A DNA stretch of 63,782 nt, the filler included, from Octopus bimaculoides (lineage: Eukaryota), in assembly GCF_001194135.2 (NCBI RefSeq). It is 7 parts of 6 records of this genome, joined end to end, with 100 filler letters (N's around TTAATTAATTAA, not from the genome) between each part and the next. Parts side by side here need not be neighbours in the genome. Positions count along the whole stretch, not along the records: positions 51,739 to 56,551 come from NC_069006.1; 6 more parts are not named here. The stretch is one strand, 5' to 3'. Positions 55,024-55,362 of this stretch are shown piece by piece; position 1 is the first letter of the stretch; each line of letters opens with the position of its first letter. The notes under the pieces are model-generated. The model had not been told where the DNA came from, made no database searches, and worked only from the letters and a program-made list of their open reading frames with translations. The position numbers and the translations under genes were made by a program.

Positions 55024-55362
55024 ATAACACGAATGCCATCAACAATGAAACTAAAACCATCAAAAATTCGGTATTCACAAAGTTCCATTAGATCAACATT
55101 TTACAAAGGTATTAGTCTTGCGAAAACAGTTGAAAATGTTAAGGCCGGTAAAGAAAGGATCGAAAACTTTCCAACTATAAATGTCGTATTACACGAAGGA
55201 AACTATTACTCCCTTGATAACAGGAGGCTTTGGGTATTTAAAAAGCTCGAAGATAAAGGATACTGTTCGAAAATAAAAGTTCACGTGTCAAATGTTAATT
55301 TAGAAACACATCGCAAATACACCACAAGAAACGGAGGAACGAGTATCAGAATGATCGTTTAA
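54520..55362 (+). CDS. ParB/sulfiredoxin-superfamily (Tox-ParB-like) domain protein with N-terminal heptad repeats; 5' end runs into an assembly gap
   Basis: 280-aa ORF; the frame is also open upstream to the gap edge at 54440. The C-terminal 105 aa (55045-55362) read MKLKPSKIRYSQSSIRSTFYKGISLAKTVENVKAGKERIENFPTINVVLHEGNYYSLDNRRLWVFKKLEDKGYCSKIKV...KYTTRNGGTSIRMIV. The P..IRYSQ.SI, P.I.V and Y.LDNRRL motifs match the toxin-type ParB/Srx domain by motif recognition, not by a database search. No stops or frameshifts. Confidence 0.8.
   Translation: MELKPSGMELKPSEMELKPSEMEVKPSEMEVKPSEMEVKPSEMELKPSEMELKPSEMELKPSEMELKPLEMELKPLEMELKPSEMELKPSEVELKPSEVELKPSEMEVKPSEVEVKPSEVEVKSSEMGVKPSEMELKPSEMELKPSEMELKPSEMDVNPSEMEVNPSGITRMPSTMKLKPSKIRYSQSSIRSTFYKGISLAKTVENVKAGKERIENFPTINVVLHEGNYYSLDNRRLWVFKKLEDKGYCSKIKVHVSNVNLETHRKYTTRNGGTSIRMIV

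Follow-up and report, generated by a model that had tools for sequence, protein, structure and literature searches.

An octopus gene with a heptad array and a C-terminal domain

We analysed a 63,782-nucleotide window of Octopus bimaculoides DNA (RefSeq assembly GCF_001194135.2) and describe here the piece at positions 51739–56551, which comes from NC_069006.1; all coordinates count along the whole stretch. This piece apparently carries the 3′ two-thirds or more of a single-exon octopus protein-coding gene, in which an array of heptad repeats is followed by a C-terminal domain. We judge it probable that this is a real octopus gene whose terminal domain has the ParB/sulfiredoxin (Srx) fold, belongs to a family of RHS toxin warheads and would carry out the nucleoside triphosphate (NTP) chemistry proposed below. 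The surrounding DNA is AT-rich (GC 0.28–0.46 in gap-free intervals), is broken up by three runs of N and, as the first-pass annotation had noted, abounds in microsatellites and other repeats.

The open frame (54442–55362, + strand) comprises 306 codons and a TAA stop at 55360–55362, and extends from the edge of an N run at 54440 (in frame from 54442) through the heptad repeats into the domain. That assembly gap (53991–54439) covers the start codon and the first repeats. The first-pass annotation described the gene as intact, but intactness is not verifiable from the window because the 5′ end, including the start codon, is hidden in the gap. Between 54440 and 55021 (+), a 21-nt unit is repeated in tandem 27.7 times over 582 nt (Tandem Repeats Finder period 21, 93% matches, 0% indels) and in the frame of the gene encodes heptads (E/V)LKPSE(M/V), of ELKPSEM type. 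The array is probably disordered and of low complexity, and its copy number varies among the octopus gene copies, which comprise the one in the window and two O. vulgaris paralogues. As the 21-nt repeat lacks stop codons in several frames of either strand, the openness of the array is uninformative by itself, and only the array frame that runs into the domain is informative. Long open reading frames (ORFs) of 429, 390 and 278 aa are listed across the array and the N gap, at 53799–55088 (−) and 53955–54791 (+, in another frame); all were rejected as genes, being products of the stop-free repeat and of an N run that reads as X.

In contrast to the array, the domain (55045–55359, +) is non-repetitive. 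Its 105 codons start with an ATG at 55045 that begins MKLKPSKIRYSQSSI..., and the encoded protein sequence is MKLKPSKIRYSQSSIRSTFYKGISLAKTVENVKAGKERIENFPTINVVLHEGNYYSLDNRRLWVFKKLEDKGYCSKIKVHVSNVNLETHRKYTTRNGGTSIRMIV; the envelope of the hidden Markov model and of the structural model starts slightly upstream, from about 55030. The motifs IRYSQSSI (55066–55089, +), FPTINV (55168–55185, +) and YYSLDNRRLW (55204–55233, +) are all present, as is the uninterrupted 105-codon domain itself, and the R60/R61 numbering of the first-pass annotation is right when counted from the methionine at 55045. Within the last of these motifs, DNRRL (55216–55230, +) is invariant in smaller alignments and at least 90% conserved in a 103-sequence alignment. 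The same holds for the glutamine of IRYSQSSI (family consensus (I/V)RFSQ(D/S)SI), next to which the serine is nearly invariant. A third conserved family motif, KYTTRNGGTSIR (55315–55350, +; consensus KFTTxNGGxSIRVRG), lies near the C-terminus.

The counterpart in Octopus vulgaris

The closest database relative is a "hypothetical predicted protein" of O. vulgaris (66% identity, E=5.6e-40 in a search of 5.8 billion sequences). Its gene is located on the 41-Mb chromosome OX597839.1, where two tandem copies lie about 6.3 kb apart, with open frames of 587 and 200 codons (from GTG) at 3531–5294 and 9875–10477 of the extracted locus (L001). When the first in-frame ATG is taken as the start, the annotated single-exon products measure 573 and 158 aa. 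Both copies combine the same C-terminal domain with a heptad array that is far longer in one copy and far shorter in the other.

The octopus piece in the window is collinear with the O. vulgaris unit: nucleotide identity is 90% over 52257–52439, 78% over 53486–53989 and 81% over 54440–55661, the last of which aligns with L001:4375–5595, the 3′ part of the longer O. vulgaris gene. The upstream flank (53486–53989, +), presumed to be the promoter or 5′ region, has its 78% identity to both O. vulgaris copies and terminates with a (TA)n microsatellite. In O. vulgaris a (TA)n tract ends approximately 60–70 nt before the first in-frame ATG (L001:3573), and the same tract precedes the gap in the window. 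The 3′ flank (55363–55661, +) is likewise conserved with O. vulgaris and shares AATATAAA at about 55451–55458, a possible poly(A)-signal variant. Collinearity with the duplicated O. vulgaris unit, the shared (TA)n tract and a domain GC of 0.34, equal to that of its flanks, exclude bacterial contamination for practical purposes, and the locus is genuine animal DNA.

One collinear block, at 52257–52439, deserves separate mention. It consists of 183 nt of non-coding sequence, 90% identical to L001:1763–1944 and 8091–8272 in the two O. vulgaris copies, and is thus better conserved than the coding domain (81–84%). It may be a fragment of a repeat element or a conserved regulatory element.

Fold and family of the domain

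Searches of Pfam, NCBIfam and Protein Data Bank (PDB) sequences with the single sequence and with a 10-sequence profile returned only chance-level matches; those to LmeA, GA-like, EcmrR and MMO gamma were discarded as noise. The ParB_N_Srx hit that the first-pass annotation had expected from HMMER was not among them, and no Pfam ParB/Srx profile matched. Structure prediction gave a different picture. AlphaFold2 models from a 10-sequence alignment (pLDDT 80.3) and a 103-sequence alignment (pLDDT 94.8, pTM 0.87) were compared with the PDB using Foldseek, and for each model all of the top 50 matches belong to the ParB/Srx superfamily (best E 1.7e-4 and 5.4e-4, probability ~1.0, query-normalised TM 0.44–0.59). 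They include Noc, chromosomal ParB with CDP/CTPγS, KorB, PadC, pNOB8 ParB-N, SbnI and Atu1540, as well as human and plant sulfiredoxin and an archaeal free serine kinase. The ParB/Srx fold proposed in the first-pass annotation is thus upheld by both models, which are consistent with the domain being a divergent member of this superfamily. In the model, DNRR lies between strand 58–61 and helix 64–75, such that an arginine-containing motif starts the helix after the central strand, as in other ParB/Srx proteins. Judged by topology rather than by residue-level superposition, DNRR is the putative counterpart of the GxxR phosphate-binding P-motif (GERR in ParB, GNHR in ToxB, GCHR in Srx), for which the ParB and ToxB positions were taken from bioRxiv 10.64898/2026.05.05.722872.

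Two ParB-type toxin families, Tox-ParB and Tox-ParBL1, were described by Zhang et al. (2012, Biol Direct 7:18, PMC3482391). Classical Tox-ParB carries a DGHHR motif, whereas the "rather divergent" Tox-ParBL1, connected to ParB (1vz0) with an HHpred probability of 93%, is defined by a conserved N-terminal serine (Ser/Thr, not found in classical ParB) and by an [NT][RT][RT] motif, mostly xRR, that is equivalent to DGHHR (PMC3482391). The type member of Tox-ParBL1 is NGK_2271 of N. gonorrhoeae (gi 194099761), and the domain occurs at the C-terminus of RHS, FilH, HINT, MafBN and WXG/LXG polymorphic toxins in Actinobacteria, Proteobacteria, Firmicutes and several eukaryote groups including metazoans, with Imm-SUKH and Imm44 listed as immunity partners (PMC3482391).

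The octopus family resembles Tox-ParBL1 in its predicted ParB fold and in most of these descriptors. The serine of FSQ(S/D)SI is nearly invariant in bacterial and animal members, and the serine of IRYSQSSI corresponds to the N-terminal serine that defines the family; N64-R65-R66 is invariant or at least 90% conserved. RHS_repeat, DUF6531, RHS core, PT-HINT, PT-TG and TEN_YD-shell domains lie upstream in bacterial relatives, where the domain is C-terminal, and metazoan members are found in molluscs, an annelid, tunicates and a cnidarian. None of the relatives in the sample examined had a MafBN, LXG or FilH context. The partners also differ, as the sampled subgroup has a DUF7660-like neighbour in 24 of 28 loci, and Paenibacillus a protein of 123–126 aa, in place of Imm-SUKH or Imm44. 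Immunity proteins commonly differ between toxin subgroups, and this mismatch therefore does not exclude Tox-ParBL1. No Neisseria protein is among the listed family matches, and NGK_2271 is unmentioned in other papers of the searchable literature. The published descriptors and motifs, rather than direct comparison with NGK_2271, lead us to assign the octopus domain to Tox-ParBL1 with good confidence. The combination of a heptad array with a C-terminal domain is not described in those portions of Zhang et al. 2012 (PMC3482391) that were available to us.

The first-pass annotation had placed the domain in the toxin branch rather than with classical ParB or Srx. The RHS, PT-HINT and pre-toxin architectures and the adjacent small gene agree with that placement, but the label changes from Tox-ParB to Tox-ParBL1. 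Identity with classical Tox-ParB/ToxB was ruled out, as the motif is DNRR rather than DGHHR or GNHR and PF02195 is not matched; sulfiredoxin was ruled out because SLDNRRL occupies the position of FGGCHR and lacks the cysteine.

ToxB, the classical Tox-ParB CdiA-CT, likewise uses a ParB-CTPase/Srx fold as a C-terminal warhead with a small adjacent immunity protein, and both have an x-N-x-R motif, which binds phosphate in ToxB (GNHR) and would do so in the octopus family (DNRR). ToxB is detectable with PF02195, rare (52/68,709 species) and mostly found on CdiA (bioRxiv 10.64898/2026.05.05.722872), whereas the octopus family has no PF02195 match, numbers 4,613 cluster representatives, is mostly found on RHS proteins and carries the motifs SQxS and KFTTxNGG. 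Of the two, ATPase activity has been demonstrated for ToxB only. Sulfiredoxin is also a small (~100 aa) single-domain ParB/Srx-fold protein of animals, its strand–helix motif also ends in arginine, and it ranks with the best structural matches, its target-normalised TM (up to 0.65) being the highest. It differs in the catalytic cysteine of FGGCHR, where the octopus domain has DNRR, and the two are ~13–20% identical. Srx is a conserved single-copy redox-repair enzyme, whereas the octopus gene is duplicated and fast-evolving. Zhang et al. regard Srx as an independent acquisition by eukaryotes (PMC3482391). The N-terminal CTPase domains of ParB, Noc and KorB provide the top Foldseek matches (7nfu, 7ol9, 6sdk and 7bnr, probability 1.0) and share the motif order, with a Box I-like motif followed by a Box II-like GxxR. 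The octopus domain differs from them in having no helix-turn-helix domain for binding DNA, no dimerisation domain and no ParA-binding motif; TM reaches only ~0.5–0.59, and there is no match at the sequence level.

Bacterial relatives are probable toxin tips next to a small gene

E-values of homologues ranged from that of the O. vulgaris protein to 1e-6 for bacterial-type metagenome proteins, which keep every family motif and are 32–38% identical to the octopus domain; with such scores the octopus reading frame is no product of chance. When a profile of the first nine homologues was searched against 1.84 billion cluster representatives, it retrieved 4,613 proteins at E≤1e-3, of which 2,284 reach E≤1e-10. 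The domain ends at most 12 aa from the C-terminus in 134 of the 162 proteins examined. Long members (700–2,232 aa) are RHS_repeat/DUF6531/RHS-core proteins, one with a pre-toxin HINT domain and one with an N-terminal subtilase. Precomputed Pfam annotations and source names, among them "polymorphic toxin-type HINT domain-containing protein" and "RHS repeat-associated protein", add PT-TG, PT-HINT and TEN_YD-shell.

A genome scan with an alignment of eight closer sequences, limited to one genome per species and biased to a YRMATPEE subgroup, located 35 loci in Verrucomicrobiota, Acidobacteriota, Chloroflexota, Myxococcota, Planctomycetota, Gemmatimonadota and others, including Elusimicrobiota, Deinococcus, Actinomycetota, Paenibacillus and several Proteobacteria. 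An ORF of 79–89 aa lies directly 3′ of the toxin ORF in 24 of the 28 loci analysed (L007–L017, L022–L030, L034, L036, L039 and L041), often with overlapping stop and start codons. These ORFs are homologous to one another; those tested against Pfam are DUF7660 proteins (E 1e-16 to 1e-31), while the remaining ones resemble known DUF7660 genes. A DUF7660 ORF is also present in both metagenome contigs (L005:557–811 and L006:1042–1296). DUF7660 is unmentioned in the searchable literature. A C-terminal warhead, an adjacent small gene and arrays of orphan cassettes are the anatomy of polymorphic toxins, from which we infer that the bacterial domains are toxins and, given the gene neighbourhood, that DUF7660 is likely the cognate immunity protein of a large bacterial subgroup.

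Other partners occur. Three Paenibacillaceae loci (L018–L020) have at ~4325–4723 a mutually conserved ORF of 123–126 aa that is unrelated to DUF7660 and matches no Pfam family; its product may represent another family of immunity proteins. A Bacillus toyonensis plasmid carries the domain as an unannotated orphan cassette downstream of an RHS-core gene; next come an 84-aa gene and, after it, an AHH-nuclease cassette. We also observed a stand-alone 190-aa ParBL1-type protein with an 83-aa downstream gene on the Haliovirga abyssi plasmid pHIC (L043:2743–3570), where the pair sits between recombinase genes and a RelE/ParE toxin–antitoxin pair. This pair of a ParBL1-type gene and a small gene may also work as a free-standing module resembling a toxin–antitoxin system.

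Animal relatives and the origin of the octopus gene

Homologues were found in the bivalves Saccostrea, Mercenaria (at least four genes), Argopecten, Potamilus, Sinanodonta, Tegillarca and Mya, in the annelid Dimorphilus, in the tunicates Styela and Clavelina and in the cnidarian Nematostella. All are annotated as "uncharacterized" or "hypothetical" and have no Pfam domain in this region; the octopus domain is 35–48% identical to most of them. The domain is usually at the extreme N-terminus in these animals (M..LKPSEIR(F/Y)SQDSI), often followed by degenerate extra copies; the tails are diverse and contain disordered stretches, a coiled coil or a membrane anchor at the C-terminus. The octopus architecture, in which the domain comes last, behind the repeat array, departs from this and appears to be lineage-specific. 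No signal peptide is evident in the animal homologues, which suggests that they are intracellular. The Nematostella vectensis homologue (P0173, 353 aa) combines an N-terminal ParBL1-type domain with C-terminal C2H2 zinc fingers, a fusion which hints that, in at least one animal lineage, the setting involves nucleic acids or chromatin.

A tree was built by neighbour joining (BLOSUM62) from 206 domains, including the known animal sequences above the domain-length cut-off. These animal sequences cluster in one clade of 42 leaves, the other leaves being eukaryote-like sequences, and the octopus copies stand next to P0002, which comes from an AT-rich contig. Given the short stem of this clade (0.022) and a sample that the query profile has biased, a single old acquisition of the domain by animals can be called plausible. 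The Logan contigs that carry P0002 and P0003 are AT-rich and eukaryote-like; they have no poly(A) tail and thus provide no evidence of expression.

Proposed activity and alternative explanations

NTP binding, with hydrolysis or phosphotransfer, is proposed because the conserved polar set on the ParB/Srx scaffold resembles an NTP/Mg2+ site. DNRR, the Ser/Gln pair of SQxS and the Lys/Thr/Asn/Gly residues of KFTTxNGG would form this site, and by analogy with relatives the domain would bind an NTP and then hydrolyse it or transfer a phosphate. Bacteria would deliver the domain from an RHS cage and block it with DUF7660. The animal lineage appears to have gained the domain from bacteria in the distant past and to have retained it as an intracellular protein; here the domain would act inside the cell, and the heptad array may be a regulatory or scaffolding region. 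In octopus the gene is tandemly duplicated and changes fast beyond its presumed catalytic core. A precedent for the chemistry is ToxB, a contact-dependent growth inhibition (CDI) toxin that binds and hydrolyses ATP and is blocked by its own immunity protein; an R108A substitution in its GNHR motif abolishes both ATP binding and hydrolysis (bioRxiv 10.64898/2026.05.05.722872). No activity is reported for any Tox-ParBL1 member, bacterial or eukaryotic, in the searchable literature.

Several observations weigh against this interpretation. Neither hmmscan against Pfam (E≤10) nor phmmer or hmmsearch against PDB sequences matched ParB/Srx, and for want of a sequence-profile match the fold assignment rests on predicted structure with TM ~0.5–0.6. 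The NTP chemistry is extrapolated from relatives with ~15% identity, and the stem of the animal clade is short, as noted. The substitution pattern is also close to neutral. Nei–Gojobori (NG86) comparison of three octopus copies over the 105 codons gave dN/dS values of 0.78 (dS 0.23) for the window copy against O. vulgaris copy 1, 0.87 (dS 0.25) for the window copy against copy 2, and 2.29 for copy 1 against copy 2, which differ by 4 synonymous and 30 non-synonymous changes. None of the three pairs differs significantly from 1 (binomial, P=0.09–0.44). Omega in the family-conserved codons is not clearly lower (0.55–1.68, from tiny counts), and recent neutral evolution thus stays compatible with the data. 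Of the two signs that the first-pass annotation had jointly named as telling against its proposal, absence of expression and dN/dS near 1, the second is therefore what we observe.

These values raise the main alternative, that the octopus copies are relics, either inactivated in the recent past or drifting neutrally, and represent duplicated pseudogenes of a once-functional, horizontally acquired gene in which stop codons have not yet accrued. The copies do lie in repeat-rich, tandemly duplicated DNA, and the nucleotide identity of the domain (81–84%) does not exceed what parts of the non-coding flanks show (78–90%). Nevertheless, all three frames are open over hundreds of codons, and every family-invariant residue is intact. 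Amino-acid changes among the copies also avoid the core, as defined by conservation in non-octopus members: at a threshold of at least 60% they fall in 8 of 36 conserved columns, compared with 36 of the 72 other columns (Fisher P=0.007), and at a threshold of at least 80% in 2 of 21, compared with 44 of 108 overall (hypergeometric P=7e-4). The two core columns that vary are both conservative (V/I and Y/F). Retention of 32–38% identity to bacterial members, and of 35–48% to most animal members, indicates long-term constraint in the lineage, and diversifying selection on a conflict gene would likewise yield a non-synonymous excess outside the core. We consider the relic explanation unlikely. As far as sequence comparison can tell, the octopus gene is probably functional, with a constrained catalytic core and a fast-evolving periphery.

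A second alternative concerns the activity, as the domain could be a nuclease that cuts DNA or RNA instead of an NTPase or phosphotransferase. Zhang et al. thought a nuclease conceivable for ParB-type toxin domains (PMC3482391), nucleases are common among the tips of polymorphic toxins, the neighbouring cassette on the Bacillus plasmid encodes an AHH nuclease, and the Nematostella homologue is fused to C2H2 zinc fingers. The structural matches with solid biochemistry, however, all bind nucleotides, namely CTP (ParB, Noc, KorB) or ATP/ADP (Srx, SbnI, SerK, ToxB), and the conserved D, N, R, R, K, T and N residues fit a phosphate/Mg2+ site. Moreover, Zhang et al. themselves note that mistaken assumptions lay behind the historical "ParB nuclease" label (PMC3482391). 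A nuclease thus seems improbable, and NTP chemistry is the activity that we prefer.

What such an enzyme does in the octopus is more speculative. A role in immunity or conflict would agree with the descent from toxins, with the duplication and with the pattern of replacements, and is offered as speculation. Extended further, molluscs, annelids, tunicates and cnidarians might all keep intracellular, still-catalytic Tox-ParBL1 enzymes derived from RHS warheads, and the heptad fusion, duplication and non-synonymous excess in octopus might reflect an arms race, the protein being an NTP-dependent effector, either of innate immunity or of a selfish toxin–antidote system, that works without DUF7660. 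Taken as a whole we regard this scenario as doubtful. A narrower proposal, that the gene is the toxin half of a selfish eukaryotic toxin–antidote or killer locus rather than a defence or housekeeping enzyme, would explain the tandem duplication, copy-number change and fast evolution. It draws on the toxin ancestry, on tandem paralogues with 30 non-synonymous and 4 synonymous changes, and on lineage-specific bivalve copies, with at least four in Mercenaria, and tandem-domain proteins. The same pattern is equally expected from immune genes or neutral drift, however, and no DUF7660-like antidote was found in the 4.8-kb octopus piece or the 20-kb O. vulgaris locus. We consider a killer locus very unlikely.

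Finally, that symbiont or contaminant bacterial DNA was mis-assembled into an animal scaffold, as an intronless gene from an overwhelmingly bacterial family might suggest, is extremely unlikely, since collinearity with a chromosome-level O. vulgaris assembly, in which the gene is a tandem duplicate, extends over the coding region and both of its flanks, GC (0.32–0.36) equals that of the flanks amid octopus-type microsatellites, the protein groups with the animal-type clade (KPSEIRYSQ... LWVFKxLExxG) and with no bacterial subgroup, and neither an RHS or pre-toxin region nor a DUF7660 gene was found nearby. The view of the first-pass annotation that this is an animal gene rather than contamination is thus borne out by collinearity, GC and the grouping with animal homologues, and the preferred reading remains that of an octopus gene with a Tox-ParBL1-type domain.

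Other features of the piece

Rfam and tRNA scans of 51739–56551 gave no match. Downstream of the gene, a perfect 37-nt inverted repeat (55668–55704 and 56025–56061) extends into CT/AG-rich arms that are 87% complementary (55668–55753 and 55961–56061) and enclose ~200–320 nt with a 10-N gap. The whole structure (55668–56061) could be a MITE-like element or an inverted-duplication assembly artefact near the gap. At the left edge of the piece, three degenerate direct copies of a unit containing GGTGCCAGTCATCG...CACTTGCCTCAACAGGTCTTC...TTTAGTGTCCAATGAAG are spaced by ~97–119 nt (51846–52139); this looks like a short tandem or SINE-like repeat.

Significance

What is new here is an unannotated octopus member with a new domain architecture, as the presence of the family in metazoans was already recorded computationally in 2012 (PMC3482391). 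The octopus locus itself is a modest addition, one more member of a known family with near-neutral recent evolution. The family is of moderate interest because it has no known activity and its chemistry is now directly testable, the sister ParB-type CDI toxin ToxB having been shown to be an ATPase. It is also large (4,613 representative clusters), recurs in marine invertebrates and has no Pfam model. Being the likely immunity protein of one large bacterial subgroup would give DUF7660, a family of unknown function, a role, and the genes of octopus and bivalves present an example of a warhead from bacterial toxins that has been retained within animal cells.

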